A DNA stretch of 64,000 nt from Carpediemonas membranifera BICM (GCA_019828565.1 JAHDYR010000037.1:66595-130594), one strand, 5' to 3'. Positions 13,830 to 48,889 are shown, counted from the first letter of the stretch. Numbers and translations are program-made. The notes: generated by a model not told the origin, from the letters alone.

Positions 13830-13830
13830 A

Positions 13831-25417: not shown

Positions 25418-25465
25418 CATACTGTTAGAATGGCCAGTTAATCCGGGGATATACGGAGGATAAAC
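25418..25465 (+). repeat. Left TIR of B
   Basis: catactgttagaatggccagttaatccggggatatacggaggataaac. Confidence 0.95.
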
Positions 25466-25689
25466 ACCCTTTTGCACAAGAAACTGCAAGAAAAAATGAG
25501 ATTCACCCGTATCTTTTTCACTATTTCACACGTTTCACCAACGTTTGTGAAACGTAGAGAAACGTGCGGAAGGTACGGGTAAGTCTCATTTTTGCTTGCA
25601 TACGACGTGCTAGGGGCATTCTTGTGATTCGTAGGTAGGTGCTGATGTTGCATAACCATTCATTGCTTATTCAAAGTGATAATAACGTG

Positions 25690-25917
25690 CTAGTGGTCTT
25701 TAAGTTGCTGTATTACATCTATAAACATATCTCCTATCTCTTCCAGAACGTGTTGTGTGTCATTCAGCCTCTCATTCACCAACCCCTCGCAATTCAGCCC
25801 AGTGATGTGATTTCGTATTTCTCGAACAGAATCTTGTATCTTGCCGACTTCATGGAGGCAACTGGTCATATGATTAAGCCTTTCGTTCGTGGATAACCGG
25901 AACATTGTCGTCAACAC
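25690..25917 (-). CDS. Small coiled-coil protein (B)
   Basis: Homolog of A 10413-10637 and 29513-29737. Confidence 0.7.
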   Translation of the reverse strand: MLTTMFRLSTNERLNHMTSCLHEVGKIQDSVREIRNHITGLNCEGLVNERLNDTQHVLEEIGDMFIDVIQQLKDH

Positions 25918-25939
25918 CTGCGCAGTTTAAGATGAGAAT

Positions 25940-27160
25940 ATGACGACCAGTGAAACTGCGAAGAAAGCTGAGATTTCGCAGGGCACGTCTTGCGGATCGG
26001 ATAAGAGAACAGAGTACCGCCGGCTGTTCGTGACTAGCTTCCTGGAATGCTTTTTCGACGTCGCGGACATCCCAACTATCGGTCTGACGACCTCTGACGT
26101 TCATCGCGCTCTCCTTGGCATGCAGGATGTGATATCGGGCCTCTGCAACGGCTTTCGCAAGATTGCTATTGCAAACTCCGTCAGGCGCACGACTACTGAG
26201 CCCATTCAGGCATTTGTGGCAAGTAGAAAGGGTGGCACAGAGCTCATTGGCACAAAGATACCCTACCTGGTTGTCAGAGACAGAGCAAATGCAGCTGAAC
26301 ACTTGCAGGAGTTTAGAAACAGGATGTCTGTGCTGTTTCGGGGACTTGGACTCCACGATGTCTCCAGTCTGATCACTTGCACCGGCATTCAATGGCCTCC
26401 AGCCGTTGTAATCAGGATCAAGCATCGCAAGCTCCAGCCTGAGCCACGTACCCCAGCAGAAACACCCGCAGAGACACCCACAAAGACTCCAGTGACAACA
26501 TTGGTACCAAAGCTCAGAAAAAGAGCTGACTTGGCTACCATCAAGCCTGATTCCCCCGTCAAGAAGCTTAATTTTGATGCGCAGATGCATGAGCCTGCTC
26601 AGAAGCGATCGAGGCTCGAAGAGGCTGACTTGAAGGAGGTTGCCGCGATGGTGACGGCTTCACTCTCCACAACTGTCACTGATCTCCTCAAGCAGTCACC
26701 CAAGGCCGTTGAAATGAACGATAAGGTCCCCGACCTCAAGCAAGCGACGTTTCTGAAGCTATATCAGCGTAAGTTACTGTTCGCATGCGCTGTTTGTGCC
26801 TCACCTGAATGGTACTTCAACCCAAACATGAAAAGAAACGAGTATGAAACATGCTATCTCTGCCATCAGTTCATGCATCTTCAGTGTGTCAGAGAGAAGA
26901 GGATTGATGGTAAGAACAGAAAGGTTTGCGCAGCTTGCAGTCTGGCAGGAAGGTCTAACAGATGTCACGCGTGTATCAAGGACGGAGACAAGTCGACAAA
27001 GGACACTGGCGTCTGCCGGGCGTGCCTAAACTGGTTCTGCGAAGAGAAACACTTCAGCTATGCTGAGTTCCATCTCGACGGCCAGGACTATCGTGTCAGG
27101 TTCTGCGACCAGTGTATGACTGTCTACCAGAAGGTGGCGGATATGAAGCCAATTGAGTAA
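25940..27160 (+). CDS. Tandem PHD-like zinc-finger protein (B)
   Basis: CAVC..CYLCHQFMHLQC..CAAC plus a second Cys cluster. Confidence 0.82.
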   Translation: MTTSETAKKAEISQGTSCGSDKRTEYRRLFVTSFLECFFDVADIPTIGLTTSDVHRALLGMQDVISGLCNGFRKIAIANSVRRTTTEPIQAFVASRKGGTELIGTKIPYLVVRDRANAAEHLQEFRNRMSVLFRGLGLHDVSSLITCTGIQWPPAVVIRIKHRKLQPEPRTPAETPAETPTKTPVTTLVPKLRKRADLATIKPDSPVKKLNFDAQMHEPAQKRSRLEEADLKEVAAMVTASLSTTVTDLLKQSPKAVEMNDKVPDLKQATFLKLYQRKLLFACAVCASPEWYFNPNMKRNEYETCYLCHQFMHLQCVREKRIDGKNRKVCAACSLAGRSNRCHACIKDGDKSTKDTGVCRACLNWFCEEKHFSYAEFHLDGQDYRVRFCDQCMTVYQKVADMKPIE

Positions 27161-27183: not shown

Positions 27184-28281
27184 TTAAGTGTCTTCCAGTG
27201 CCGCTCTGTGCGCAACTGTCATCTCAGTAATGTAGCGCGCGGCCATAACATCCGCCGGAGATCTCTGCAGTGGTCTATATGCAAGTACCTCAGAAACAAG
27301 GTCGACCATCTCGGGAAGAGGGATTGGCGTGCGGAACTGAGTGGCTGTGAGGATCTCAATCGCGCCCGGGGTTATGGACATTGATCCATTCGCGATAACC
27401 CGTCTCCCTGCTGTGCCAGGTGCGAGCCCATAGCCGGAGAAGTAACGCGAGACGAAGTGGAGCGGGTTGTCCATGCATGTAGTGCGGTAGAGCCAAAAGC
27501 AGTCCTGCAGGACGAGTTCGTTGGCAAGCATTTTCTCCGGAGTGAGAATGATGCACGTATGCTCGTATGCCTGGGTCGAAATGGACTGCTTAAGCAGAGA
27601 GAACTCGCTATTGTCCGCTCCGGTACAGGTGGCGAAGTAGATGAGCCGAACCCGGCTGGTGGTGACGAGGGATGGCTCACGGAAAGCGAAGAGGATCATC
27701 TGTACGATATCGTGAAGGTACAGGAACTCGTTAGCGCTCGCATTAACGATCATTCTCGACGTTGTGGTCTCGCTGTGGCCAGAAACAACCCAGAATGTCT
27801 CGAAATTGGCGAATTCTGCAGCCAACTGTTGCAGTATGGAGCCGAGGTGGGTCGTCGAGACGAAACTGACGGCAACCGTGGTGAGCCATTCGTCGCTGAC
27901 GAGATCGAGGATGGCCTTCATGCGCTTGTGGTACCCCTCGGAGCCAGCAAGCCCGGTGACAGTGAAGACCGGGTTCGCACAAGTAGGTGCTTCGAAGCCA
28001 TGGACTGGCTCGAGCAGGATAACGATGCGGCGGTTCACAAGCTTGCTCAGGGTGAAGGGGCAGTCATGTGTGTACCTGATTCCGTCATATTCCTTCAGGC
28101 CCTGGTTGCGAAGGTCAGAACGCGGCCTAGTGATTCCACAGACGCATTCATACGTGAGAGGATGGTCGCTGATGCGTCTGGTACCGAATTTGCCAAATTT
28201 CCTCTCCATTTGGCAACTACCACTTTTTTTCCAACACTGGTAGTTGGCCGAACCAGCTATAGGGAAGGATATGGACCACAA
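27184..28281 (-). CDS. Zn-finger plus caspase/CHAT-like His-Cys protein (B)
   Basis: Strong similarity to 7985-9058; SGHS and FATCTG conserved. Confidence 0.6.
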   Translation of the reverse strand: MWSISFPIAGSANYQCWKKSGSCQMERKFGKFGTRRISDHPLTYECVCGITRPRSDLRNQGLKEYDGIRYTHDCPFTLSKLVNRRIVILLEPVHGFEAPTCANPVFTVTGLAGSEGYHKRMKAILDLVSDEWLTTVAVSFVSTTHLGSILQQLAAEFANFETFWVVSGHSETTTSRMIVNASANEFLYLHDIVQMILFAFREPSLVTTSRVRLIYFATCTGADNSEFSLLKQSISTQAYEHTCIILTPEKMLANELVLQDCFWLYRTTCMDNPLHFVSRYFSGYGLAPGTAGRRVIANGSMSITPGAIEILTATQFRTPIPLPEMVDLVSEVLAYRPLQRSPADVMAARYITEMTVAHRAALEDT

Positions 28282-28394
28282 TAAGCAAGCATTCTGGTGT
28301 TACAGATAAGATATTGTATGTGTGTCCTTTACGGTGTGAGACGGCCCCATCAATCCCGAGAAATACCGCGTGTCCGTTTGCAAAAAAAAATCAG

Positions 28395-29204
28395 ATGGCG
28401 AGAAGAAAGGCGCTCCCACCAAAGCCGCAGCCTGGGGGTATCAGAATACCCATTACGTCCACTGCGGGCAAGACGCCGCCGTCTGCGCCTTCAAATGATT
28501 CTCAGGAGGATTCCTCAAGCGAAGATTCCATCATTGAATCCGTTGTGCATACTCAGGCACTGCATCCGGATCTGGTCGCCGCGATCTACCCAAACACTCC
28601 CGAGGAGTCGATCAGGGGAGCTTAAGGAGGCCGAGAAGGACCTTACTCCCCTCGAACCCCCGAGTTGGTTATCCACCCGGCTGACCCACCCCTCCATTGC
28701 CGTTGAGGTGCAGCCTTGTCTGGCTCCCGACCACACGGACGTGGGTAGAGGCCTCATTGCAACTGCCGCAATTGAGCCCGGAAAGCTCCTCGGCATTTAC
28801 GCCGGTAGGATTGTGTCCGACGAGGACTACCACGCGAATAACAGCAACATGGTGTTTGTTCATTGTTCATTATGCCTTTACACAGCATTTCATTCGACGC
28901 TAGCAACCTTCACGTCGACGCAGGCGAAGGTGAAGGCATTGGTGTACACCTCATCAACCACAGTGAGAGTGACACCAACTGCCAGTTCACCAACCGTTTG
29001 CTCAAGGACCTTCCAGTCCTTGCGGTTGAGTCGACGAACGTCATTCAGGCCGAAGAGTTTCTTCGTATCAGTTACGGCGAGATCTTCTTTGATGCGGGTG
29101 AGGTCTTAACCATTGCTAGGTTCCCGAGTCTGCCCATTTCTCATCCGAACTATCTCACAAGGTTCCTGGAGCAGTATCCGGCACTCAAGAAGCGGAAGAA
29201 ATGA
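28395..29204 (+). CDS. SET-domain methyltransferase (B, frameshifted)
   Basis: MARRK start; VGRGLIAT, GIYAGRIV, LINHS..NC, EEFLRISYG. Confidence 0.85.
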
Positions 29205-29229: not shown

Positions 29230-29358
29230 TTACTCGGGAACTCCACGCTTAACGTCCTCGGCATCAACAACTCTCTTTTCGCGATCCTTATCGACTGCCT
29301 TGCGCTTGATATAAGTCGTATGAGCCTTTCTCTTACCACCCTTTGAACGTTTGCGGAC
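29230..29358 (-). pseudogene. Displaced 3' end (42 codons) of the B OTU gene
   Basis: Removing A and one AA copy restores ...EHATLF-VRKRSK...GVPE* in frame. Confidence 0.85.
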
Positions 29359-29360
29359 AA

Positions 29361-29410
29361 CATACTGTAAGAATGGCTAGAGTCTCCCGGGAGATACCCT
29401 GGAGATACTC
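29361..29410 (+). repeat. Left TIR of A
   Basis: catactgtaagaatggctagagtctcccgggagataccctggagatactc. Confidence 0.95.
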
Positions 29411-29512
29411 CAAAAAGTGCAAGAAAAAATGAGATTCACTAGAATCTGTTTCACATTTCACATATTTCACAAGAATATGTGAAATGAGAAGCAAAGCTAG
29501 TGAATGTCATTT

Positions 29513-29737
29513 TTACTTGTCCCTCATCGTCTGTATGGCATCTATAAACAAATCACGTATCTCTTGCAGCAGAAACTCTGTGTCATTCACCCTTTTGTTG
29601 ATTTCTTCTTCCTTTCGCAAGCCCTGAGCAGTTTTTCGGATTATTTTGTAAGAATCTTGTACTTTGGCAACTTCCACGAGCCCTGACGTTACCGTTTCTA
29701 CCTTTTGGTGGCTAGTTGCTCGAATCATGATCGACAA
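29513..29737 (-). CDS. Small coiled-coil protein (A copy 2)
   Basis: Same protein as 10413-10637. Confidence 0.7.
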   Translation of the reverse strand: MSIMIRATSHQKVETVTSGLVEVAKVQDSYKIIRKTAQGLRKEEEINKRVNDTEFLLQEIRDLFIDAIQTMRDK

Positions 29738-29823
29738 ATGTCGCAGTTTTAGGTATTGTCAATGCCAGGAGTCTACGTAAATAGACAAATGTAACAACGT
29801 AAACAGCTTGGATAGAAATTCTC

Positions 29824-31048
29824 ATGAATTCAGAAGTGTCTGTACCAGAACCTATTGCTGCTACGCCCCCCATCAGACAGTATGGCAACAGTAAGCTCGC
29901 AAATCTCCGTCGTTCATTTGTTACAGCCGTTGTTTCTTCAGTATTTGAGGACGACGAGGCAACTGACCTCGGCTTGAGTGCACGCGACATCCATAAGGTA
30001 CTTCTGGAGGTCCAGCGCAGGGTCGCCGCCGAATGCCCTGGGTTCAAGTCAATTGAACTCCGGGAACAGGTCAGGCGGACGACTGTTGTCGGCGTTACTA
30101 CGTTTATAACAGCAGTTAGACCCTCTGCGGAGTACAATGGCTCTGTCATGCAGCACATTGCTGTCCGTAGTCAGCCCTGCCATGCCGAGTTCCGCCAGAT
30201 GCTCTCAGAAGTTCTCTCAGATGCTGGACTGAACGATGTTTCCGACTCAATCAGCCTTGAGAACTTGCCTGTGATCAACCGGGTGAGATATAAGCCTGTC
30301 AAGCAAAAGGCAACGGTCAAATCGACCCCCGACTACGATGATCAAGGCAGAGATCCCACCGATACGGTCGACTACGCAACTGTCTTCACTTGGTGTTGGT
30401 GATGAAGCAGACACACCTCAGTCAACGACAGATCGATCGGTGCCGGTTCGGAAGAAGATCGTCTTTGACGACGAGGAAGCCAAGCGACCCAGGCTTGGTG
30501 ACGACGATCTGCAGCAGGTGTCTAACAACGTGTCCGATGCTGTTGTTGACCGTATTAAGGTCCTGATCAACGACGTTGTCTCAGAGACCCGTGTGAGAGA
30601 CCCGCCTACCGAACCCGAGACATGTAAGACGACTTTCCTTAGCCTTCATCAGCGCAAAATGCTGTTTGGATGTCTTGTGTGTGGTACCCCCGAGTGGTTC
30701 TTCAATCCAGACGGCACTACGTTCAGGAGATGCTGTGCTTGCAAAGGTTTCCTGCACGAGCAATGTGTCAGGACGAAGGGCAAGAAGGACTACTGTCCCG
30801 CGTGCTATATTACCGGCTCTAGCAACAAGTGCCAGGCGTGCAAAAAGGGCCTAAGATCCAAGAACACGAAGAAAGCAGAAGAACAGGCTTCTACTCTTCT
30901 TTGCTGCCGAGGCTGTCACTGGTGGTACTGTGAGCATTGCTCTGAGGAAGTGCAGTACACCATTGATGGCAAGTTGTACATCGTTCCCCTCTGCAGCAAA
31001 TGTAAGGTTGTCTATAAGCGAGTAGAGGGCATGAGACCGATTGTTTAG
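29824..31048 (+). CDS. Tandem PHD-like protein (A copy 2, frameshifted)
   Basis: Copy of 9102-10326. Confidence 0.8.
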
Positions 31049-31091
31049 TGTTTAGTGAGAGATGATCATAAATTGTATATATATCTGTTTA

Positions 31092-32168
31092 CTACACGTC
31101 TCTCTCAAGCGCACGGGTCATCATGCTTATGTATCGATCATTCATAAGTCTTCTCTGGTCGGTTCTTAACGGGTCATACTCGTTGACATCAGAAACGATG
31201 TCTTGCATTTCAGGAAGAGGAATGGGCCGGGCATAGCTAGTCTCAGACATGATGACCCTGGCCTCGTTGGGAAATGACAAGGAACCATTGGCTATAATCC
31301 GTCTTCCTGCTGAGCCAGGCGCGAAACGATAGCCAGAGAAGTACTTCGTCAGAAAGAAAAGAGGATTGTCGAGGCATGTCACGCGGTAGAGCCAATAGGC
31401 GTCCTGGAGAACAAGCTCATGCGCCAGAACCTTCTCAGGAGTGAGGATAATGCATGTGTTCTTGTACTTGGCTGTCGAAATAGCACTGCACAGCTGAGAC
31501 TCCTCAGATCTGTCGAGTCCGGAGCAGGTGGCAAAGTAAATCAGACGCACACGCGTCGATCTCACCAAGGAAGGGCTCTCGAATGACCTGAGGATGAGCT
31601 GGACCAGATCATGGTGATACAGAAACTCGTTCGTAGACGTATCAATGATCATACGCGACGTTTCTGTATCAGAATGACCCGATATCACCCAGTAAGTGTC
31701 GAAGTTAGAGTACTGCGACGCCAACTCCCTCAAGTACCTCGGCCAGATGGGACGTAGACTTAAAGGTGCGGGCAACGGCAGTCAGCCACTCATCATCAAC
31801 GAGCTCTAGAGCCGTCTTGAGCTTGAAATGATAGCCAGATGAGTTGGCAAGACTTTCCACGCGGAAGACGGGGTAGGGCTGAGTCGGGGTCTCGAAACCA
31901 TGCAGCGGCTCGATGGTGATTAGCACCCGTCGGTTAATCAACTTCTCTGTTGTAAAAGGACACTCGTGAGAGGAAGAAGACTTGAAACCGATCCCGCGAT
32001 GTCCACGCCTGAGCTGAACCTTACCACAGACACATTCAAAGACTTCTTGGTCCTTACTGATGCGTCGCGTGCCGAATTCTCCGTATTTCTCGTCCATTTG
32101 CAATGTGCCATTTTTTTTTCATGAATGGCACATTTTGATTTGAAGCAAAGGACAAGCTTTTGATCCAA
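31092..32168 (-). CDS. Caspase/CHAT-like protein (A copy 2, frameshifted)
   Basis: Copy of 7985-9058. Confidence 0.6.
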
Positions 32169-32292
32169 GTAAAGAGGTATACCTTCATTGCTACACTATT
32201 TATGCATGCTACTGCAGCATTGTTCGGATCTGATCAGCGATGCGCCTGTTCTTCGGATCGGGAGTTGCGAGAAAAAAAAAGAGAACGAAGAT

Positions 32293-33297
32293 ATGGCGAG
32301 AAGAAAGATGCCCGCAAGGAAGCAGCAACCGGTAGGTAAGAGAAGGACTCAAAATCCACCCAACAAGACTTTTTGAGTCATCTGCTTCTCCGCAGGATCA
32401 ACGTCCTGCGGAAACGACTGTAACGGCAGCATCACCTCCTCCTCCGCCTCCCGAGTCGCCCGAGGATGGTAAGGAGCAAGATTCTCCTCCTCCTCCGCCT
32501 CCCGAGTCGCCTTCCCATTCATCCAGCTCGTCTGAAGCCGAGGAGGACTCCGTCGAGGGGTCCGTCATGCACGTCCACCCTAGGTGGACGCATGTTTACC
32601 CGGGTTCAGACCTGCAGGACGTCAAGCGGCTGATTTCGGATGAGATAAGCCTTCAGGCCATTCCTGCTCCGGCCTGGATCTCATCCGAGACCCGTTGCGA
32701 CCCCCCGTCTGACCCAGGAGCCCGACCATCCGGCCCTCAATCGGACGCAGAGCGTCGGCCGAGGCATGATTGCCACTGAGGATATCTCAGCTGGCACATG
32801 TCTCGGCATATACTTCGGGAAGCTGATTCCCGATGCTGAGACGGCCAGCAACAACGGCCAGATGGTGTTTGTTTCGCATATTCCATTACCATTACACAGC
32901 ATGTCATTCGCTGACAGTCAGGTCGCCGTCGATGCCATGTCGGCCGCAGCGGGTGTCCACCTGATTAACCACAGCCCTGACGATGTCAACTGTGAGTTCG
33001 TGGACGTCTTGGTGGATGGCCTGCCAGTGATATCGGTCAGGGCCACTGCCAACATCGTTCGCGGCGAGTTCTTGCGCATCGATTATGGCGAGACCTACTT
33101 TGAGGCCGATGAAGAGGAGCACCCGGTTGCTCGCTTCAAGAGTCTCGCCATAGATGACCCTCACTACCTCGCTCGAAAGGTGGAGCAGTTCAAAAATACT
33201 GCAGGTCAAGCCGCAGCCCCGCAAGCGGAAGACCAAGTCCAACCCCGCCCGTAAGCGCTTCCACACTGCGCGCATGACTCAAGGCAAGAGTGAATAA
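32293..33297 (+). CDS. SET methyltransferase (A copy 2, frameshifted)
   Basis: Copy of 6860-7862. Confidence 0.85.
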
Positions 33298-33327
33298 ACT
33301 TGAAGAGATATCAATTCAATCAATCAT

Positions 33328-34702
33328 TTATGAGCGGGTGACATCCTCCGGACGAGTAGCACGCTTCTCGGGCTCTGCGGCAGCTGCCTTGCGCTTGCGG
33401 TCCGGAAGACTGTAGACACAGGCATGACGATTCTCGATGACGATGAACTGAGTGAGCTTCATGCTCTCACAAAGACCTAAGATCTTGTCCAGCGTCGCAT
33501 CCTGGATGGGCAAGAACTCTGAATCTTCCCAACCTTTGTGGACCCAGAGGCAGGTAAGGTCCTCGTCGATCTGGGTGATGATTACCGGAGTGTGACTCAG
33601 CTCTACACTGGCCTGGATGGCCTCATGGTCTGCCCAGGGGAAAGGGGAGCCAGGCATCTCAGAGAACGGGTCGCCCTCGAACCCCTTGCCCTCACAGAAG
33701 GATCGGATGTCCTCGTACAGCTGAAGCTTCTCACCAACAGTAGGCTGGGACCCAGTCCTGATGAGATGCATGGCGCTGAGAATGCATGAGCCATCCCCAG
33801 GCACCTCAGACCGCTTCAGAGAGCTTGTATCGTTCTTAAACTTCTTAGCGGTCTTCTCCATGATGGTCTGGACGTCATCTTTGGGGTCTGCGGCCACCAA
33901 AGCCTCCCGATCCAGGTCTATGACCTCAGCCTCCTTCTTCAAGGGCACAAGCTTCTCCGTCTCGAGCTTTTCAATCTTGGCCCGGGCTCGCCAAAGCTCC
34001 CTCTTCAAATCACGGATCGCACCGTTGTGTTCCACGGCAAGATGGCGGCGCAGGAGGCGCGATGTGCCACTTCAGGGTACTTCTGTGGACGGGAGAGTCC
34101 ATCAGAAGCGCGTCCAGGTGCCTTATCCGGTCGAACTGCACGTCGACCGGGTCCGACAGCTCAGGCTCGGCGTTGTTCTTGAACGAACGGACGACCCCCG
34201 ACCTTCCTGGCTTCACCTTGCGCATTATGCGCTCACGGAGCAGCGAAAGGACTGAATAAGCAGGAGTTATTTGGAGTACTTACCTCCAACGTCGTGCTCG
34301 TGATCCGAAGACACTTCTCGGCGGACCTTCTGGACAAGGCTGTCGTAGGCATGATCTCCCATGACCTTCTTCAGCTCAGCCGATGTCGTGATCAGCTCAA
34401 GCTGAGCCTCGGCAGTTTCTCTTAGGTGCAGGATAAGGTGAGGCGACCTGAAGAGCTTGCGAAGCGTTTTCCAGCCAATATCTGTGTAAAAAGGTATGGG
34501 GAAAGTACTTACGATCACGAAGAAGGGCGGTGAGGATCTTGTCATCGGGCAGAAGGAACTTACGAAGAAGTGAGCACTTGATCATCTCCTGCGCGTTTGA
34601 TGAGGCCTGACTGATCTCAGCGCTGTCATAGAAGATAAAGAACTGCTTACCAAACGTTTTCGAACGCTTCAAGAGCATGTAGAAGTCGAAAACCGATTGC
34701 AT
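33328..34702 (-). CDS. OTU-like protease (A copy 2, spliced)
   Basis: Copy of 5455-6829. Confidence 0.72.
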
Positions 34703-35402
34703 GATTATAAGGCTCTCAGGACCTAATGAAAAATTCATAAGGCTCTGAGAGCCTAATAAACCATGCGGAAAAAATGACCAGTATCAGTAGGCAACGGCGC
34801 GCGGGAGATTCATTAGGCTCTGAGAGCCTTATACACGATTTCGAATTGGTGTATAAGGCTCTGAGAGCCTTATGAACTCAGAGGAGGTCCTCGGGGCACT
34901 TCGGTGCAGAATTTTGATTGGGCATCTGATTGGACCATGGGGCGGATGCTCAGAGGGATGAATGCGAGCTCAATGGAGACCATTGGACATGTCAGAGATG
35001 GCATGTCCAGGTGAAGGTCCATCATGGAAGGAGCCATTCACGATAAGTCTTCTAAATGTTGTGTTGCGAGCGTCTGAAGGGCTTTCTCTGGATACCGACC
35101 AAGATGGAGGTCACGTGGATCAACGGACGATAATTGCGGTATTCTGGCCTTGTATGCCACTCTTAAATCCATTGTTTGATCCATTCCCGCGTTTATAGTT
35201 CATCTCAACGCTTCCTCGACGAGTTACAATTGTTGATGTTGTTTAGGTTCTATTACAGGCCATTCGAGGCCACAGAGCTCTCATGATGTTGTTTTAGTGA
35301 TATACACATGCTTGCCAGCGTTTGAGGATCGATACTCTTCTCCTTTCTTCGTTTGGTTTTCTAATTTCGTTGCGAGCATAAAGTGCACCTTGAAGAAACG
35401 TT

Positions 35403-36089: not shown

Positions 36090-36109
36090 TAAATCGACTG
36101 CTTCTTCAT

Positions 36110-37067: not shown

Positions 37068-37195
37068 TTTCACAAACTTTTTGTGAAACCTGCGAAATGT
37101 GAAATGTGCCATTCATGAAAAAAAAGTGGCACATATGAAAAATGAATGAATTTATCACGGAACCATCTTACATCACTTTATATCACGCGGATGCC

Positions 37196-39746
37196 TCAAT
37201 TCTGTCTGCTACACTCTCCACACAGGCAGCAAACTAACTCTATGCCATGGTCCGCCAGACTGCATGACATCGTGCCCTCCTCACCCCACGTCAGCGTCGT
37301 ATGCTCTTCTACAAACTCCCACACTTCATCAACAGTCTCCTGAAAGGTCTGGATCATCTCACGAGTTGGCTCGAAGGTCACGGTGGTCAGTGTGCGGACA
37401 CCAAACCAATGCTTCGCATCCTTACAGCAGTCGTGAACTCGCACACACTTGAGTCGCTGGAGCTGGGGGACAGAGTAGTCCTGCCGACCAAAAAGAACGC
37501 ATGCCCGTCAGGAAGGAACACGCGAGAGTTGTCTGCTCGATCAAGCAAATGCCCTCAAGGACTGCCTTCCTGTGCAACTTGGCTGCTACCTCCTGGTTCT
37601 TGATGAACTCTCGCTCAAAGTACTCCTCTAGGATATAGAACAGCGGCACCTTGAGATGCTTGTGGCACAGGGGCTGCGTCGTGAGTCTGCTGATGCTGTA
37701 GAGGTTCTCAGCGCACGGTTTCTCCTTCGTCTTCGCTTCGCTGCTTGATAGCAGGGATATGGAAGTCTTATCCTTGTTAGGAATGAACGCAATCGTGACG
37801 TGAATGAGGTGGGCCACTGCGGCAGCCATGAAGTGAAACGCGACAGCCGCGTCAGTCACAGGTTCGGACGAGTAGTACATGGCCTGGAGGTAGCCAATGA
37901 GCCGAATGATATCTTGAATGCACTCAGGGAGAGCAACGTAGTCCTCTTGGTCGTGGCAGCCATCCTTACACGTGCGGACGACTGCTCGTTACAACCTACG
38001 GTCCTATCGATGCTTCGCATGGACGACATACGGCCAAGCTTAAGGTTGAGGAGCTTATTCTGGATGATCTCCTCGCGGGACCCGCGGGTGGTGGGATGCT
38101 TCTTGAAAGAACCACAGATATGGGCAACCTGCTCGAGTAAACGGTGCGAGTCGTGCATGAATGGAGGGCATATGACGATCTTCTCAAGAGGGATGACACT
38201 ACAATTCTCGAACACCATGCGTTCATTGGTGAAATCGCCATAGATTGCAAGTACATCTTGAACTCGGTTCGGGTCGTCGACTTCAGCCTGGTATGCTGTC
38301 TTATCGTCCAGGTTGTCCTTGATGGTGAGACGATGGCGGCCTGCTATCGGGTGGAGCGCCTTACTTTTGTGGTAAATCGTGTTGCAAGGGTGTGGATAGT
38401 TGGGCCGGCCCGACTTTCTGGACAGCATGTGGCGGAGGGCGGCATGATCGCCCATGACGATGACATGGTCGAAGATTGTGACCTCACCAGTGTCTCTGAT
38501 GGGTATCTGACTCGTGTATAGGCGCTCAATCTCCTTCTCGACGCGAGAAAGAGACTCTTCCATCAACAAATCACCCTCGCTACCCATATACTCGACTATA
38601 CGGAAAGGTGGAGTAATCTTGTTGGGGAATGTGAAGCCTGTGGGGTCGTAGATGCGGAGCTTGAAGGCAGCAGAACCCCCTTTCCACCCGTCAAGCCATA
38701 GTAGGATCTTCATGGGGCTAAACGTGACTCCAACCCTGTTGCCAAGGGCGTTCTTGCATCGAACGTAGTTGGGCTGGTCCGACTCGAGCCATTCCGGGTG
38801 GCGAACAGCTTGCTTGAGGTAACGAACGGCATCAAACCAGACTCGATCAACCTTGTCCCATGTGGAGCTGTTGAGCCGCTTGCCGAGGGTGACTCCCTGG
38901 GTCTGCTTGAGCTCAGGGCGATGACTTGTGGCCACATCGCTCGTCTCGTAGTGAAGATCAAGCATTGGCTTCTCCCACTTGAAGTCAATGACGTTCTCCG
39001 CGTCCGTCAGGGGCTGGATATCGACACCCTCGTCCACCGTTAGGCGATTGGTGCACTCGAGTCTCGACTTTGTGCCATTTCTGCCCCACCGCCAGGTCGT
39101 GTTGACTGTGACAGACTCCACAGGGACGAGATGACCCAAGAAAGCAACCTCTGGTCTAGTCAGCGCTGCAACCAGGCCGTTGATCTTGGTGATATTGACC
39201 TGCAACTGCTTCACGAAGATATCAGCAGCCTTGCTGGAGATGATTGGCATATGAAGTCGCGCAGAAAGACTACGGATGAGCTTAAAGAGCTCATGGGTTG
39301 CGTTACAACCCGACTTGATGTACATCAGGATAGAAACAAGCTCCAAAAATCTGCTTGTAGTTGTCAGTTTCCTCAGTTGAGACCTCGTGCTGTCTCCGCA
39401 AGCGTTCGTGGGTGACAGCAATACGCGCGTGGTCACGTACGAAGACATCGAAGGTCGGGGCGACTCCTCTATGGGAACGTACTGCACGCAAGAAGGGTCG
39501 AGAGTCGTGCGGGTCGGCGAAAAATCTCGGATCGACCTCCATGTCCGCAAATAGGCCCTGGTTAGCCATTTCCAAGATGAGTTCACGGAATTCTCGGCGC
39601 TGGCGGCCTCGATCCTGTGTATTTCCGCCAATACCAACAAGGGAGAGGTATGTATGAGCGAGAATGTAGTTCATACGCTCTGCAGTCCTTGGAGGGCCAG
39701 TATTGTCGTAGACAGTGCCAATGAAGGTCTGTATGACAATGTGCAT
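37196..39746 (-). CDS. DDE transposase (A copy 2, frameshifted)
   Basis: Copy of 408-2961. Confidence 0.75.
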
Positions 39747-40654
39747 GCTCAGGAATTTTTGCTGAAGTCACTTTCACATTTCACAAGTTTCACAAGAGTT
39801 TGTGAAAGATTTTTGGTTTGGGGCTTCCGCTGCTCTGTTTCCTCCAAAAAGTTGTGAGCAGCAACTACACTGAGTTTTATACGTATTCTATGCTTCTCAT
39901 ACCCATTGATGCGTTATTGCGCAATTCTGCTTTGCCCTCAAAGGAAAAGTGAATTTGAATTTCCCCCTGAATCTTGCAAGATACTGCGGAAGTAACGGTA
40001 AGAAAAAATGAAACTCGCCAACGAAAGCAGCTGGAAGAAAATGGTAAAAAGTATTGGAACTAGGACAATATGGTGTACACTCTGAGCAACTTCATTTCTT
40101 TCTGGCGTTCACCTGTGTCACGAGCTCTTTGGGCACTGTTTCGGGCGTTAGGACAAACCAAGGGTTCCATGATCCTTTGTTGATCTAGTTACACCTCTGT
40201 TGTTAGCACAATCTTCCAAGACCATCTCATCGTTGATAAAATTTTGCAGATTTTTCGAATGCGAGAAAATGAAGACTTCCCCACAGAACCTGAGTATGTA
40301 CGGATAGTACTTGACCCCCATGGATTATCCCCCCATGTTTGGTTTTTGTGGGGAAGTCTTCATTTTCTCAATCTCTGATTCAATCATTAATTCATACGGA
40401 AGTAGAAGATACTGGAGGCTGAAAACTTCAGAGGGCATTGCTATTAGCTATAAAACACCGCTGTTAAGATCCCATGTTCGAACGAGCACTTCACATTTAC
40501 AACATAAAATGCGTTATCCTCTTTTATCAACACTGACACCATGTGATACTTCAAGACGCCAGACATGTCTTTTATGCTTCTATAACTACCTTCTAGATGT
40601 TCTGGAGGTGCCTGAGATCGCCTGGATCGCGAGGTTTGACCAGCGTTGACACAT

Positions 40655-40704
40655 GAGTATCTCCAGAGTATCTCCCGGGAGACTCTAGCCATTCTTACAG
40701 TATG
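40655..40704 (-). repeat. Right TIR of A
   Basis: Reverse complement of 29361-29410 with one mismatch. Confidence 0.95.
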
Positions 40705-42751
40705 AAATAGCGTCGCATGCTCATCCTTGACGACCACAATAGCTTGCGCCGCAGCCACATCTTCATCAGATCCACGCCGGACCATGCCGGACTCATAAAC
40801 TTCCGTCAAATGCATCCGCACAATATACTTGTCATGGTACGTCAACATCTTGACCCAGATAACGACTACAGTCTTGCTCTTCAGAGCTGACCAGGCCATG
40901 ACACCAAAGTTGCTGTACCAATCAGTGGCATCGTCGAACATCAGGGTGGGCACGAACACGTTAGACGTCTCAAGCCTCAGCCTCTCGCCAGCATCGGAGA
41001 ATCCCCAGGCGCGCACCTCCTCCCTCACTGCTGCCACTTCCTCTGCCGCAAACTTCTTGTCGAACTCGCCATTCTCAACCTTCTGCAGGCAGTAGCCGAT
41101 GCACAATCCATCCGGGTTGACTGCAATCTTCCGCCAACTCTTACGATCTTTGAGAACTCGCTCGCCTACCTTGTCGTACTCCACGTCGATGTACTTCTGC
41201 CTATCAACGTCGCTCCGTAAGTATATCTGCATAGGGGGAACATTGGCAGGCGTCGGAGAGTGCTGTTTGATGATAGCCTTCATCTCTGGCGACAGACCGA
41301 GGTCGAGGGGTGGGACCGTTATGAACTTCTGGCCCCCGTACCTCATCATGGTGCTATTGATCCGAGTCCATAAGGCTCCAGTCACATTGTTCCTCTGGAA
41401 CAGTACCATCAAGGCAGCGAGAGGAACGTAGCGGTCAAGCTCCACTGTTGCCTCCTCGGCGCGCCTGACAAGCTCAGCCCAGTTGTCCTCGAGTTCATCG
41501 GCGAGCGCTTCAAGCCCAGCCTCACTCGCCCGTGCCAACTCTGCTTGAGTAAACTGATGGATCGCCTGATCCTCGGCCTTCTGCTGACCTAACTCAGCTT
41601 CAAGTCTCTTCTGGGACTCCTCAGACTCTCTGTTAGCCTGTTCAAGCGCCTCCCTCGCCTCCCTCTCCTCAGCAAGCCGTTTTATCAAGGGCTCGTACTG
41701 CTCCAACAAGCGCACAGACTCAGGGACATCATCAAGGCCTGCAATGGTGTCGTCTAGCTGCTGAAGGAGAGAACCAACGGTGTCTGTGTCGTCCACATCG
41801 GACTCTACGTCGACGTCTTGATCAGACTGTGGCAAAGGAACGCCGTCACCCTGCATGGCGGCCGGTTCAGAGTGGCCATCGGACTCGGACTCGTCAGTGT
41901 CGGAAAATTCATCGTGTGTCGTGGACTCTGCGTCGACAACCGGAAGCGGCTGAGGGGCAGCAACAACGGAAGAAGGCTTGGTGGCTGCTGCTGAGCGATC
42001 CTGGGCCCGGACTAACTCCTCTTGGACCTTCATCAGAGCAGCAGTCGATGAGGCGAGCTCCTTCTCAAGACGAGCGATCTTCCTCTTCAGAGGAGCTGAC
42101 GGATCGAGCGAACCGATCTTAGCCAACTCCTCGGCCAGCTTCTCTGAGCCAGCGAAGGACAGCTTCTTGCTGAGCTGGGCGTGGGCGATAAACTGGCCAA
42201 ATTGGCCTGCCGGAACACGAGAATCGAGTTTCTTCGAGTCCTTGTGGCGCAACACAAGGTGGAATGCGCGGTAAATCTCAACCTGCTTCTCAACAGGGAG
42301 CGAGTCGACGCCGACTAGAGCCTTATGAACAGATTTGGCGGTGAAGTGGTCACAAAACTTCCGTCGGAATGCCTCAATTGTGTCGGGAGAGTCAAAGTCG
42401 ACCTCGCAGAGGTAGTTGCGGTTAGTTGCGTCACATATCGCGCGTAGTTTGGCAACTCCATAGTCGTGAACGTGCTGGCTTAAAGTGCGCTTCAACGGGA
42501 ACCCGAAAACAACGTTGATCGTACGAATGCTGATCAGACGGACGCAAACGAAGAACAGAGGGTCATCAGAGACGATGCCGTGATCTTGCAGCCAGGTTAT
42601 ACGGCTCTTTGTGGACGAAAGGGCGTCGTATGCACGGAATGAATCATCTGTGTAAATAGGACCGTGAAAATGAAAGTGACATACCAGAATCGTCAGGAGC
42701 AAGCATTGTCTCCTTCAGTTTGCCGAGAGAGATGATGTCTTCGTTAACCAT
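40705..42751 (-). pseudogene. Coiled-coil plus OTU-like protease of B, disrupted by A near its C-terminus
   Basis: NPDGLCIGYCLQ...EHATLF. A 37-nt intron at 42648-42684 links the ATG at 42751 in frame. Confidence 0.75.
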
Positions 42752-43430: not shown

Positions 43431-44192
43431 ATGGCAAGAAGTAAACAAGGCAATATACAGGCCACTGAAGCTCAAAAGGAGAGGAGAATGGCTCTTGGCA
43501 AGAAAGCGCAGCAAAAGAGCCAGAGCAAGTCCAACAAGTCCACGAAAACAGCCCGAAAAGCTCACAAGACGCCCGTCGAGATTGTTCAGACCTTTATCAG
43601 CAATTTCCTCACTAATAATGACGATATTACCCGCGCAAACGGATGGGTTGTCGACTTCAGCCAGAAGTTTGCCGCCGAGGTCCCTAAGATGAAAGTAGCC
43701 TCCTTGAAGAAGGACAAGCTCTACGGCAATCTCCAGTCGGTCGAAGAGATCAGCCGCAAGTGGCAGGGAGGCGGTGATGAGGACAAGCGTCACCGCTTCA
43801 AGGCTCTCCTCAGTCTTGACGCTCAGACAGATGAGCTAGACACGGACGACCCACTCATCGCGACTGTCCGCGAGATGGATGATGCCTTTCACCGCATTCC
43901 CATCGCCTACCGGGCTAAGGTCCATGCCTTCGCTGCTTCATCGTGCGGTGTGACGGTCGATGACGTCAAGCTCGTCCTGAGCAAGCCTTGCCGTGACCGC
44001 GACGCGGATCTCATCTTCGCCAGACCCACCAGAGTTCTGAAGAAGGAGGCTAAGACACTCAGTCAGCTCACTTCTGTCATTGCGAAGCGGAATGCGGAAC
44101 GTGCTGAGGCTGAATCGCGTGATGTGCTGCGTCGCAAGGTATACCAAGCCATCATGAATTACTACTTAGAGTGTTCGGCACAGGAGCTATAA
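43431..44192 (+). CDS. Basic HTH-like protein (B) with H3-tail-like N-terminus
   Basis: Homolog of the A 228-aa ORF (RF.AL.SLDA, IAKRNA.RA.AE.RDVLR). Starts MARSKQ. Confidence 0.78.
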   Translation: MARSKQGNIQATEAQKERRMALGKKAQQKSQSKSNKSTKTARKAHKTPVEIVQTFISNFLTNNDDITRANGWVVDFSQKFAAEVPKMKVASLKKDKLYGNLQSVEEISRKWQGGGDEDKRHRFKALLSLDAQTDELDTDDPLIATVREMDDAFHRIPIAYRAKVHAFAASSCGVTVDDVKLVLSKPCRDRDADLIFARPTRVLKKEAKTLSQLTSVIAKRNAERAEAESRDVLRRKVYQAIMNYYLECSAQEL

Positions 44193-44216: not shown

Positions 44217-45142
44217 TTACACTTCTTCGTCATCCTCAACGGAAATATTCCATTCACTGTCCCAGAAGTTGGCTTTCTTCTCCTTACGCATCTCGGTCCT
44301 CGTTTCCTTGATCTCTTTGACCAGCGTGAAAGAACGAAGGTTGTAATGGCGGATAATCATCAACTTCTGCCTGATTCGGGTGACGTTAGGCCGTTTTGCC
44401 GCACGTTCACGGCGCACGGACACACGGGTGCGTTCCACGAACGAGTCAACACTCCTCTTGTCGGAAGCAGGCATCCCATGAGCGTGCTGATCAAGTCTAT
44501 TACCATGGTTGGTCACGCGGATCAACGTAGAGCCTTGCATTATCATCCCACAGCACTCTGTCAGGCTCTTGCCGAGGTTGGTCCACTTGTTGGGACCCAT
44601 CGTGCCCTCCATCGTGACAATGGCAAGTGGGTTGCCCCCCGTGTCCACCAGCTGCTCGACCTGCGACGGGTCCGATGACTCCTTGAGGCCAAAGGACGCA
44701 TACATGTCCTGGAGTCGCTTGTCGCACTGCAGTCGGACGAGTTCTTCGGCAGATGCTATGCTAAGAAGCACCCTCGCGAACCCAAGACCTCTGCAGGAGA
44801 CGGCTGTCCGTAAGCCGATGACAAACCGCTCCTGGTGCAGTTGTCCGCTCAGGGTCTGCCCCTCCCTGTACGACTCGCGGAAGAGAAGGCATGCAGCCTT
44901 GATGTTGTCCATCTCAACCCCACGAATTGCGATGAGACTGTGTTAACAAGAAGTGTAGTGGGTCTGACATACATGACGAATGAGTAGTTCAGACAGTCGA
45001 GGTTCGAAGTCGCCAGATCTCTGTTGAAGAAGGCCCTGACAGACGGCAAGAGCTCAGACTTGTCTGAAAGCTTGACATATTGAATATAGGCCTTGTGTTG
45101 CGATAAATTCATCGTCAGCCATGTCGGAAGTGACGTTTCCAT
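44217..45142 (-). CDS. GNAT acetyltransferase (B, frameshifted)
   Basis: RTAVSCRGLGFARVLL, MYASFGL, GPNKWT shared with A. Confidence 0.75.
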
Positions 45143-45265
45143 TGTTTTTCACCAAACAAGTGACGTAATGTGAAAATTGTGAAACTACCAATGTTGAAAA
45201 AAAAATTGGTAGTTGGGGGAAACACACCAAATGGGATGTACTGACCAATAAAACTCCTTTACTCA

Positions 45266-47844
45266 CTACTCAGCGCGTGCATGACCGCAAATGCAGCAAA
45301 CAAGCTCCTCACCCATGTCTGCCAACTCGCAAACCATCACCCCAGACTCTTCGTCCCATGCCAAAGCCGAATAATCGTTGACGTACTGCCACATCTCGTC
45401 AACGAGCTCCTGGAAGAGGCGCACCACCGCCGCCGTGGCATGGAATTGGTGCCTTGCCTCCATGTGGCTGCGAATGGCGAACCATGAGCGAGCTTGTCTG
45501 CAGCATTGGTGGACTCGGACACGACGAAGCCTGTTCAGCGGGGGGACTGAGTAGTCCTGGCGACCGAACGAGCGAATACCCGTTAAGAACGTGCAGATGA
45601 GGGTGGTCTGCTCGGTCAAACACAGCTTCTCGATCATGGCCGACCTGTGCAACTCGGCTCGGACCTCCTGGTTCTTGATGAACTCTCTCTCAAAGAACTC
45701 CTCGAGGAGGTAAAAAAAGAGGAATGCGGAGATGATCGTGAAGAAGAGGCTGGGCAGTGAGCCTGCTGTTGACATAGAGTGTCTGGGCACATGGCTTCTC
45801 CGCCTTGTCTGCTTGCCCAGGAGGGAGCAACGCCAGCTTTGTCTGGTGTGCCTGCAGACTGAGCATGACGTGGAACAGGTGGCACATGGACGCGGCCAAG
45901 AAGTGGAATGCGACTTTGCTGTCGGTGACAGGCTCGGTTGAGTAGTAAAGAGCCTGGAGATAGCCAATGAGTCGCACAATATCTTGGACGGACTCAGGAA
46001 GAGCCTCGTAATCCTCGTTCGTGGTGTTCGCCATGCGAACTCTGGCAGCAGACTGCTCGTTGCACCCGACAGTGCGGTCAATACTGCGGTTGGATGACAT
46101 GCGCTGGAGCTTGCGCTTGTCTACGGCAGTTGCGTTCCGATCAGCGGGGAAGCTGGCGCATAGCCGTGCCACTTGCTCGAGCAGGCGGTGCGAGTTGTGC
46201 ATGATCGGAGGACAAAAGACAACTCGCTCCGTGTGGATGACTCGGGGCTCTGGCCGGTTCTCGAAGATGGCCCTCTTGTCGGAGAAGTTGCCATACTCCT
46301 CTTTCGGGTCCTGCACACGGTCGGGGTCGGCCTGCACGGCGTGGAACGCTGCCTTCTGCTCGAGCAAATCATGCAAGGTGACCCGAGAGTGCGCCGGAAT
46401 GGGGTGCAGCGCCTTGTGGTCTCGACGGATGCTGTTGAAGGGCTGGGGATAGTGCCCTCCATTACCCTCGATGCCGGATGACAGCTTCCTGATGGCCGCG
46501 TGATCGCCCATGACGATGACTTGGTCGAAGGTGGTGACCTGGTCAGTTCCTCTGATCGGTATGAGGGCTTGATAGATCCGCTCGACTTCTTCCTCAACGA
46601 GTTGAAGGTTTCCCTCCTCCGTCAGCTCCTTCTCACCGGCAAGACACTCAACGAGTCGGAAGGGGGGAGTGATGCGGTTAGGGAACGTGAAGCCTGACGG
46701 GTCGTAGATGCGGATCTTGAACGTTGCGGTATGTCCCTTCCATGCGTCGAGCCACAGGAGTAGTTTTAGTGGTTGGAACTCGACATGGCCTGGGTCCTGA
46801 AGGGCACGAGAGCAACGCTCGAAGTTCGTCTGGTCAGACTCGAGCCACTCCGGGCGAAGCACTGCCTGCTGCAGATAGTACACGCCATCAAACCACACCG
46901 TTTCCACCTTGTCCCAGGTCGAGCTGTTCAGTCGCTTGCCCAGATGGGCGATACCTACACTGCCTTTGAGGGACTGGTAGTGCTGGACAGCGTCGGATTC
47001 GCTGTCATAGTGGAGGGTGAGCGTCGGTCGCTCCCAAGTGTGGTCGGCGACGAGGTCGTGGTCGAAAAACGGAGTCGGCTCGGCTCCGTCGGCTACAGTC
47101 AAACGGTTCGTGAGCTCAAGTCGCGACTGCGTGCCGGACATGGTACGCCGCCATGTTGTATTGCCTGAGACCGACCTGCACGGCACGAGATGCTTGACGA
47201 AGGCGCGCTCCTCCTCAGTGAGGGCCTCTGAGACACCAGATATTCTGGTCATGTCAATGCCAAGGTCCTTAATGAGCACCTCCGCGGTCTTGTTCTTCGA
47301 GATCGGCTTTCCAAGCCGGCGGGAGATGTTGTTGATGAGCTTAAAGAGCTCTTGGGTCGAGTTGAAGCCATTGCGGACGTACATCAGGATCGATGTGAGC
47401 TCCATGATTTCAGAAAAGTTGGCGGAGCGCTCCTCTGAGTCGTTGTAGTCCTGCACAGCACGCTCCTGGATGGCGTGGGTGCGGTAATTGTCCCGTACGA
47501 AGACAGGGGTGAGGAGGGTGTTGATTTCCGTGTGCGGTTGCGGCACGTTGGAAGGGACGGGAGTCTGCTGGAGGGCGGAAGAACCTTGCGTCGTGAATGC
47601 GCTGGGAGATCAGGTCCGCCTCCTCCATCTCGCGGACGAGCTGGCAGAATTGCTCGCGCTGAGGTCTTGTTCTGGCGGAGTTGAGGCCAATTCCGACCAT
47701 GGCGAAGTAGGTACAGCCAAGAAGGTAATTCATGCGCTCAACTGAGCGTGGCTGGTCATCATATATTGTACCGATGTGGCTCTCGAACACAATATGAGCA
47801 ACCATGATTTCTGTAGAGTTTAAAAAAACAAGATTTTTGTACAA
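45266..47844 (-). CDS. DDE transposase (B, frameshifted)
   Basis: LWLDAW, VMGDHAAI, PPIMHN, LEEFFEREF, C-terminal CCICG. Clearly homologous to the A transposase. Confidence 0.75.
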
Positions 47845-48841
47845 AAACTAGGCAGGTACATGCGCAACGGTCTGTGAGATAAATCAGACAATTTGGCTGT
47901 TGCTATAGCTCTATAAGAGCAGCTACAACTGCGCTGCCGGGGTTCCTTCTTCTTCTCTGGCCGTTTCAACACTATTTCACAATTTCACCAGTTTCACACA
48001 ATTGGTGAAACAATGTTCAGAACTCCTTCAGTTTATGGACGTTGGCTCCGAAACTAAAGCAGTGTGTGTATGAGAGTGCCTGATTAAGATTCATCTGATT
48101 TTCATCTGCATTACTTGCGAATTTGCTGTTGTGCTCCTTGTGCACAAAAAAAAGCAAATCTGGATTTGATCTCGAATATTGCCATGATGAAGGCGACACA
48201 AAATGCTCATTTGCCAACCAGTGCAGCTAGAAGAAAATGGTAAAAAGTTATGGATACTGCATGGGATGAGGCCCCCGTTGATGTGTTAAACGGCCATGAT
48301 CGACCGCTCAACGTCAGCGCCTCTTTGGGCACCTTCTGCGGCGGTGGATCATGCCAATTGCCGATCTCAGCTCTATGGAGCTAAGTGCACTTGAGCTCTG
48401 AGCCAAGTCTTCTGATTCCATCTTATCGCCGATAAAAAAATGCAAATTTTGAGATACAGAAGATTGAATCTGTCCCCAGAAAACCGAACATACTCCGATG
48501 ATGTATACTGACTATATACCACCGTAGTATGGCCTGCTTTCTGGGGGACAGCTTCATTCTTTTGATTGGTTGATTCAGTCATTAGTTCCCGGCGACTGAG
48601 AAGGAGTTGACGCATAAAAACAACAGAGGATACTCTTTAGAACACACAGACTTTGCTGACAAGGCCACTTGGTCGTACGACCACTTTTGCCTTCGACCTT
48701 AAAATGCGAGAGGCAATTTGCTCGACCACCAATCTCGCACATGTTACATCAAGCATGGATATGTCATTAATGCACTCGCATCTATCATTTCAGCTGCTTC
48801 TTAGGACTTCGAACGCCCTGAAGCACGAATAAGGAATTTGC

Positions 48842-48889
48842 GTTTATCCTCCGTATATCCCCGGATTAACTGGCCATTCTAACAGTATG
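48842..48889 (-). repeat. Right TIR of B
   Basis: Exact reverse complement of 25418-25465. Confidence 0.95.

Follow-up and report, generated by a model that had tools for sequence, protein, structure and literature searches.

The 64,000-nucleotide stretch of the genome of the metamonad protist Carpediemonas membranifera BICM that is analyzed here (GCA_019828565.1 JAHDYR010000037.1:66595-130594; hereafter the window, with positions counted from its first letter) contains, at 25418-48889, two autonomous cut-and-paste transposons with terminal inverted repeats (TIRs), one of which, element A, is nested inside the other, element B. In addition to a DDE transposase, each of them encodes seven accessory proteins, namely PHD-finger, caspase-fold, SET, OTU-like and GNAT proteins together with two small proteins, and this accessory module has been co-inherited with the transposase and is under purifying selection. 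On the whole, we are inclined to think that these are autonomous, recently active elements of an undescribed deep lineage of the CMCT (CACTA/Mirage/Chapaev/Transib) clade, in which the module serves the propagation of the element itself, the leading version of this view being that it acts as an anti-silencing or self-chromatin system.

Structure and nesting of the elements

The boundaries of the two elements are as follows:

25418-48889, element B, interrupted by A, 11-12 kb without A
25418-25465, plus strand, left TIR of B, 48 bp, preceded by a GT target-site duplication (TSD) at 25416-25417
48842-48889, minus strand, right TIR of B, 48 bp, perfect, followed by the GT duplication at 48890-48891
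29361-40704, plus strand, element A, 11,344 bp, inserted in B gene 5
29361-29410 and 40655-40704, TIRs of A, 50 bp, 49/50 matching
29359-29360 and 40705-40706, TSD of A, AA

The TIRs of A and B both start with CATACTGT(A/T)AGAATGGC, so that the tips read 5'-CATACTG...CAGTATG-3'. When the C. membranifera assembly (24.2 Mb in 69 contigs, the window being located on contig 38) was searched for this 17-mer start, 100 occurrences were found as compared to none for the reversed control. Among these ends, there are about 16 A-type pairs with a spacing of ~11.3 kb and about 9 B-type pairs with a spacing of ~12.1 kb, and some of the longer pairs probably hold nested insertions. A 2-bp TSD of varied sequence flanks 8 of 9 further end pairs, with a chance expectation of 1/16 per pair, and 12 of the 13 elements overall that were examined for tips and TSDs (families A, B and C, and the foreign locus L061; see below). 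The insertion of A with a 2-bp duplication is proven by five B copies devoid of A, each of which has an empty site with a single AA, exactly as predicted. Thus, the initial annotation, which had described two elements with their own 48-50-bp TIRs and 2-bp TSDs and had proposed a genome-wide tabulation of the 17-bp TIR starts, element lengths, TSDs and empty sites, is borne out by the whole genome. No sequence preference was detected in a search for a target-site motif at 32 insertion flanks. Within a family, the copies differ by 7-46 substitutions per 11-12 kb (identity >99.6%), which implies that the amplification was very recent. Transposons are not mentioned in the C. membranifera genome paper (PMC8516963).

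Several further features of these elements were observed along the way. The beginning of the window (1-10789) belongs to one more A copy (G000:C38:66042-77383), oppositely oriented, so that the window holds three elements of the family. Elsewhere in the genome, the left end of B (~1.5 kb) is repeated, along with the same non-element flank, head to tail every 11.1-11.25 kb, with five units at G000:C67:749166-793906 and two at G000:C3:92352-103507 (L007, L008); a tandem or segmental duplication with a truncated B copy inside could account for this arrangement, as could an error of assembly. In their left subterminal regions, B and A (25470-25550 and 29415-29480, respectively) share GCAAGAAAAAATGAGATTCAC followed by three TTTCAC repeats; these sequences do not occur at the right ends and may serve as a promoter or binding site.

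Gene content and collinearity

When A is removed, B is collinear with it, with ~68% nucleotide identity in patches and 30-66% amino-acid identity, and the two elements contain eight conserved coding blocks in identical order and on identical strands. The genes of element B are:

25693-25926, minus strand, B gene 1, small protein of ~75 amino acids, predicted helical, homologous to A gene 1, covered by RNA-derived contigs
25940-27160, plus strand, B gene 2, 406 amino acids, C-terminal C4HC3 PHD finger and a second Cys-rich finger
27184-28209, minus strand, B gene 3, caspase-fold protein (clan CD, CHAT/paracaspase-like), N-terminal CxC..H..C motif and an invariant His/Cys pair
28395-29204, plus strand, B gene 4, predicted SET methyltransferase (exon 1, 28395-28853; intron, 28854-28885; exon 2, 28886-29204)
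29233-29358, minus strand, 3' end of B gene 5 (last ~42 codons), split off by the insertion of A
40707-42714, minus strand, main part of B gene 5, 712 amino acids in intact copies, acidic/coiled-coil N-terminal part and OTU-like C-terminal domain
43431-44192, plus strand, B gene 6, 253 amino acids, homologous to A gene 6
44217-44912, minus strand, B gene 7, GNAT acetyltransferase-like
45269-47847, minus strand, B gene 8, DDE transposase, 860 amino acids in the intact C7 copy, frameshifted in the window copy

The genes of element A are:

29516-29758, minus strand, A gene 1, small protein, predicted helical
29824-31048, plus strand, A gene 2, PHD-finger protein, frameshift near 30330 in the window copy, intact (407 amino acids) elsewhere
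31092-32189, minus strand, A gene 3, caspase-fold protein, frameshift near 31720 in the window copy, intact in the C3 copy
32465-33254, plus strand, A gene 4, predicted SET methyltransferase (Pfam SET, E = 1.4e-11), 5' limit (~32465) mapped from an intact copy
33328-34279, minus strand, A gene 5, 316 amino acids, C-terminal OTU-like domain (DGSC Cys loop, C-terminal His)
35403-36089, plus strand, A gene 6, conserved protein of 228 amino acids with a weak helix-turn-helix (HTH)-like stretch only
36110-37165, minus strand, A gene 7, GNAT acetyltransferase-like, RGxGxA motif, upstream limit approximate
37199-39670, minus strand, A gene 8, DDE transposase, 824 amino acids in intact copies, two frameshifts in the window copy

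The frameshifts are copy-specific: each gene except for SET is a single open frame in at least one copy, and two A copies are intact across all 750 residues of the transposase query. The small gene 1 is a real conserved gene in both elements. A Pfam search with the raw open reading frames (ORFs) of the window recovered only SET, owing to the copy-specific frameshifts, and intact copies were used instead. The claim that both elements contain the same eight genes in identical order and orientation thus stands for the coding blocks, with the qualification that gene 5 is common to A and B only in its OTU-like C-terminal part.

Conservation and selection across families and organisms

The C. membranifera genome contains a third family, C, with a transposase 46-50% identical to those of A and B, a TIR start CATACTGTTAAAAACGG, a CC duplication and a length of ~13.9 kb; in this family, genes 2-8 follow one another exactly as in A and B, strands included, and the OTU domain is missing. 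Yet another family, E, has in common with A and B only the transposase and the PHD gene. Between families, the proportion of synonymous differences (pS) is 0.6-0.9, that is, saturated, whereas the proportion of nonsynonymous differences (pN) is 0.3-0.5 for every gene. Because of the saturation, the A-versus-B ratio of nonsynonymous to synonymous substitution rates (dN/dS) that the initial annotation had suggested computing is not given as a number, and the result is stated as pN being well below pS. The identities of most of the genes follow the pattern of the transposase, A being closer to B than either is to C, which suggests vertical co-inheritance. The exception is gene 5, which is 69% identical between B (40707-42714) and C (L051:5982-7664), with pS of 0.35, whereas all other B-C pairs are saturated; hence, gene 5 appears to have been exchanged between families. 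At G000:C1:1476077-1477453 (C1x ORF 6077-7453), an ORF near another element variant, with a transposase ~45% identical, matches the OTU profile (E = 2.6e-5), so that the OTU domain is present in some lineages beyond A and B.

The linkage extends beyond C. membranifera. At four foreign loci (L061-L064; GCA_002919055.1 and a metagenome), transposases 22-30% identical to those of the C. membranifera elements are found beside homologues of the cargo genes, namely PHD, caspase-like, SET-like and GNAT genes and a gene-5-like gene with the OTU Cys loop. The gene order differs in these other organisms. One of the loci, L061:2171-13799, is a related element of 11.6 kb that has CATACTG tips, is flanked by a GC duplication and interrupts the pol gene of a Ty3/gypsy chromovirus, splitting this gene into an integrase half and a reverse transcriptase half on its two sides (677-2206; 13748-15128). 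In every lineage seen, family E included, the PHD gene accompanies the transposase. Thus, the initial annotation was justified in viewing the cargo as a selected module rather than the result of random capture, given the three families with saturated pS and pN of 0.3-0.5, the distant foreign loci, and the transcription and splicing described below; its description of the toolkit as "fixed", however, overstated the case, inasmuch as family C is devoid of the OTU domain and family E keeps only the PHD gene.

This pattern bears directly on the possibility that the transposons picked up these genes from the host and carry them as neutral passengers: capture of host fragments is known for DNA transposons, and many of the copies are frameshifted, but the conserved arrangement of the genes in three families despite saturated synonymous divergence, the pN values well below pS, the preserved catalytic motifs, the same kinds of genes beside 22-30% identical transposases in other organisms, and the transcribed and spliced SET gene largely refute neutral capture and leave it hardly any probability.

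Predicted functions of the accessory proteins

The PHD finger of gene 2 is defined by a C-x2-C...C-x2-C-x4-H-x2-C...C-x2-C signature that is invariant in seven proteins and is accompanied by the second Cys-rich finger; compared to the Protein Data Bank (PDB), the gene 2 profile retrieves 1wev (E = 2.6e-5) and then the PHD fingers of BAZ2B, Sp100 and WSTF. For gene 3, no Pfam match was found; the structural model (predicted local distance difference test score, pLDDT, of 65.6; predicted template modeling score, pTM, of 0.71) is most similar to a SAVED-CHAT protease (Z 12.9), followed by MALT1 (11.4) and caspases (10-11), with metacaspases also among the matches. Two residues that are invariant in six proteins, His in GH172 and C222, are located at the ends of successive strands of the model and constitute a candidate dyad, so that gene 3 can be described as encoding a predicted caspase-fold (clan CD) cysteine protease-like protein. 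Gene 4, a predicted SET-domain lysine methyltransferase, is readily recognized by Pfam (SET, E = 1.4e-11 and 3.2e-11; for A, 45.1 bits versus a cut-off of 22.4; for exon 2 of the B gene alone, E = 0.0037), and the motifs GRG, INHS and (D/S)Y are found in A, B and C, that is, GxG, NHS and the catalytic Tyr are all kept.

The C-terminal domain of gene 5 contains a DGxC Cys loop that is invariant in five proteins, each of which also has the C-terminal His. The Pfam OTU model itself does not match gene 5, and a two-sequence OTU profile retrieved nothing from the PDB; a five-sequence profile, however, matched OTUD3 (E = 3.8e-4), viral OTUs and A20, 13 of the 15 matches being OTU proteins, which makes the domain an OTU-like predicted deubiquitinase. 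The situation with gene 7 is similar: A gene 7 and B gene 7 alone have no Pfam match and a three-sequence GNAT profile gave non-significant results against the PDB, whereas the homologues from the foreign loci L063 and L064, which match A gene 7 and family C gene 7 (blastp, ~1e-7), pass the Pfam Acetyltransf_7 cut-off of 27 with 36.5 and 31.4 bits. A joint profile retrieved 44 PDB chains, nearly all of them named N-acetyltransferases, and R143 and G146 are invariant, with the R-G-x-G-x-A motif retained; accordingly, gene 7 is designated GNAT acetyltransferase-like. As judged from these alignments, the expected catalytic motifs of the cargo proteins are all intact. Of the gene calls in the initial annotation, those of PHD, caspase/CHAT, SET, OTU, GNAT and DDE transposase hold, and the HTH-like assignment of gene 6 is not confirmed: the Pfam matches, all on one 17-residue stretch, are below the threshold (Sigma70_r3, 0.054; MerR; winged HTH), and no usable PDB profile or ESM Atlas match was obtained for gene 6.

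Three of the element proteins, encoded by B gene 6 (43431-43480), the B SET gene (28395-28440) and C gene 6 (L052:551-600), start with MARSK, MARSN or MARRK, which recalls the ARTKQ N-terminus of histone H3. In a single complex prediction, the PHD region encoded by B gene 2 was paired with the N-terminal, H3-like portion of the B gene 6 protein; the score of 0.01 counts neither for nor against binding.

An intron in the SET gene and transcription of the elements

In all B and C copies, the two halves of the SET gene are in different frames, with the break at the same conserved ATGGTGTTTGTT. RNA contigs of runs X1 and X3 skip positions 28854-28885 of the window, a 32-nucleotide GT..AG stretch in the B SET gene, and the joined exon sequence is not present in the genome; hence, this stretch is a spliced intron, and the interpretation of the frame break as a sign of a pseudogene or a programmed frameshift was dropped. 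The homologous GT..AG stretch is 29 nucleotides long in C (L051, ~5580-5610) and 33 nucleotides long, and in frame, in A (~32870-32902); the 5' site, GTTTGTT, is conserved, with splicing seen for B only. Compared to the transcript contigs, the B copy of the window has 1-nucleotide homopolymer insertions at 28382 (13 nucleotides upstream of the start) and 28615. When the intron is removed and the homopolymer lengths of the transcript are adopted, B SET becomes one open frame from 28395 to 29204 by script translation; the joined product was used only for this frame check, and the exons were searched separately. The extra bases at 28382 and 28615, one in an A-run and one in a G-run, the latter position being in the SET coding region, are also seen in comparison with some other B copies. 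Many of the single-copy frameshifts may be homopolymer errors or mutations.

The same RNA contigs also span genes 1 and 2 of B, the 3' end of B gene 5 (continuing into the empty-site sequence) and A gene 1. Thus, no fewer than four genes of B type, as well as A gene 1, are transcribed, and B SET is spliced. Separately, contigs from run X5, which is labeled as a different organism (organism B, 2016), are >99% identical to pieces of the window at 27186-27560 and 29361-29536, that is, in B gene 3 and at the left end of A; either C. membranifera DNA is present in that sample or the label differs.

A transposase of a probable deep CMCT-like lineage

An exhaustive HMMER search of 1.84 billion proteins with the transposase yielded 21 matches, which come from C. 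membranifera, GCA_002919055.1 and metagenomes, and word-indexed protein searches, in which the transposase itself, the gene 3 profile or a 16-sequence transposase profile served as the query, returned only Carpediemonas proteins and one homologue from GCA_002919055.1, the single close match being a hypothetical protein of C. membranifera. An alignment of 17 sequences contains invariant W-x-D (D253), D334 within G/A-D-H, PPxMH, RTTGCNEQ and LEExFER (E608, E609, E612), which gives a candidate catalytic triad of D253, D334 and E608/E609, numbered from the first Met. The model of the 486-residue core (pLDDT 87.8, pTM 0.88) adopts an RNase-H fold that combines a core beta-sheet with an all-alpha insertion domain. 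In a Foldseek comparison with the PDB, the best match was RAG1 (E = 1e-8, ~490 columns), followed by BbRAGL and Transib, with Hermes not significant; in VIA-align, RAG1 (Z 13.9) was followed by the P element (13.7), BbRAGL (12.9) and Transib (8.8), the rest having Z <= 6. A shape search of the ESM Atlas retrieved clusters that contain DUF1280 (nematode), Plavaka and Transposase_21, with template modeling (TM) scores of 0.5-0.74, and the feature search agrees.

The CMCT clade has been defined by 5'-CA..TG-3' termini, TSDs of 2-5 bp and C(2)C / H(3-4)H motifs (Kojima 2025, PMC12730594), and one of its members, PlavakaB, has CATCA tips and 2-3 bp TSDs (PMC12730594). The C. membranifera elements conform to the first two features, with CATACTG...CAGTATG tips in A, B, C and L061 and 2-bp TSDs. 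No sequence match to the named CMCT member families (Pfam Transposase_21, Plavaka and others) was found, the affinity with them being indicated by the structure and feature searches. We read the transposase as a new deep CMCT-like lineage, outside every named family, in agreement with the CMC-group affinity proposed in the initial annotation, which is upheld by the CA..TG termini, the 2-bp TSD and a DDE model closest to RAG1/Transib and to the predicted models of Plavaka and Transposase_21.

Plavaka, particularly PlavakaB, as well as other Mirage/CMCT elements resemble the elements described here in the CA..TG termini (CATCA in PlavakaB, CATAC here), the 2-bp TSD and the shared ESM Atlas clusters; unlike Plavaka and other CMCT transposons, these elements have no Pfam or HMMER match to a named family, do not conserve C(2)C / H(3-4)H, and are 11-14 kb long with seven accessory genes. 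RAG1, Transib and ProtoRAG provide the best solved-structure matches, over ~370-490 residues that include the catalytic core and the insertion domain, and the spacing of the acidic triad is similar. However, the identity is only 11-14% and the P element scores almost equally (Z 13.7); furthermore, the TSD is 2 bp here as compared to 5 bp in Transib, and the C. membranifera elements have neither a RAG2-like gene nor heptamer/nonamer ends.

Possible roles of the accessory module

What could be the benefit of such a module to a transposon? VANC of the Arabidopsis element VANDAL21 is an element-encoded protein that frees its own copies from silencing (PMC5735166), and an anti-silencing role of the module is plausible by analogy. 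The module would recognize, add and remove lysine modifications and would also cut proteins, acting on the nucleosomes of the element or on the element's own proteins, and this action would keep the copies expressible and mobile. Within the module, the PHD protein is the most constant partner of the transposase and may be an accessory transposition or targeting factor comparable to TnpA in CACTA. VANDAL21 is a functional model only: VANC is a sequence-specific DNA-binding protein with no known enzymatic domains, encoded by a Mutator element.

Several observations weigh against the interpretation of these elements as autonomous, recently active members of a deep CMCT lineage with a module that serves their own propagation. 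Most of the sampled copies carry frameshifts, which may be either mutations or long-read assembly errors. The RNA support comes from contigs that give no expression levels, and A genes 3-8 and B genes 6-8 were outside the stretch compared. The kit is not invariant, considering the missing OTU domain in C, the lone PHD gene in E, and the different gene order in other organisms. Pfam assigns no family to A gene 8, B gene 8 or ten relatives at E <= 1. Finally, neither the C(2)C nor the H(3-4)H pair is present in A, B or C; among the relatives, there are vestiges, namely a Cys ~19 residues past the second Asp in 7 of 16, a His ~22 residues before the Glu in 9 of 16, and CxxC in one.

The most serious competitor, which we nevertheless rate as rather unlikely, is that the accessory proteins do not counter silencing but assist transposition as cofactors. 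Under this scenario, target or donor chromatin would be selected by the PHD protein, SET and GNAT would mark nucleosomes or the transposase, and components of the transpososome would be processed or stabilized by the protease and the OTU protein. The PHD gene is found with the transposase even in family E, where all other cargo is missing. CACTA elements, the nearest named group, require a second element-encoded protein, and RAG1, the fold of which the transposase resembles, needs the PHD-bearing partner RAG2. The insertion flanks, however, show no target preference, and the other CMCT families described in PMC12730594 are not reported to have enzymes of this kind.

It is also conceivable, albeit improbable, that the genes constitute a conflict or signaling module apart from chromatin, which would act on host ubiquitin, proteostasis or cell death, or function as an addiction-type system to the advantage of cells that retain the element. 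This view can draw on the SAVED-CHAT defense protease as the best structural match of gene 3 and on the viral OTU domains among the PDB matches of gene 5, and OTU proteins, viral ones included, strip ubiquitin or ISG15 from many substrates; nonetheless, the combination of PHD, SET and GNAT is suggestive of lysine marks on histone-like tails, and no toxin-like or sensor domain was found.

Implications for transposon and host biology

Transposons are usually viewed as passive targets of silencing by host chromatin, and where they are known to counter it, a single protein is involved, for instance VANC, TET/JBP, or a SET or OTU protein on its own. Fungal transposons that carry TET/JBP genes (KDZ, Plavaka, EnSpm, ESTA and others) are similarly cut-and-paste elements, some of them of the CMCT clade, with an enzyme that acts on an epigenetic mark and a proposed role in silencing escape (PMC12730594); they differ in having a single enzyme that modifies DNA bases, as opposed to several protein-modifying enzymes plus a reader in a metamonad protist. 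SET cargo is known from HarbingerS and MuDR elements of Phytophthora and from proto-Helentron, and an OTU protease from Helentrons (PMC12730594; PMC4067079). These elements share with A and B a conserved SET or OTU cargo, but carry single cargo genes and belong to unrelated superfamilies (Harbinger, Mutator and rolling-circle), and the combination of PHD, caspase-like, SET, OTU and GNAT genes is not reported for them. In the literature, we found descriptions of single epigenetic cargo genes and none of this transposase lineage or of a multi-gene, multi-enzyme kit, in line with the statement of the initial annotation that the combination is unlike that of described cut-and-paste elements. The element described here, which is present in many copies and was active recently, retains five different enzymes and readers, linked across families that have no synonymous-site similarity and across organisms; this five-member linkage argues for a coordinated, element-encoded system.

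A more far-reaching version of this scenario, which we put forward tentatively and regard as doubtful, is that the elements represent an ancient, superfamily-level RAG1/Transib-like lineage in distant anaerobic protists that has possessed the chromatin kit since before the divergence of the hosts, with each copy maintaining a private chromatin state. If so, this would be the first transposon known to have a multi-enzyme histone-modification system, as compared to a single counter-silencing factor. The transposase itself represents a further deep branch of the group from which RAG1 arose. Given that the proteins are small and mostly encoded by intronless genes, direct enzymatic tests are feasible.

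As for the host, C. membranifera is devoid of canonical replication-origin and kinetochore proteins (PMC8516963). The element-encoded chromatin enzymes account for >1% of its genome and, therefore, may matter for the chromatin biology of this organism.

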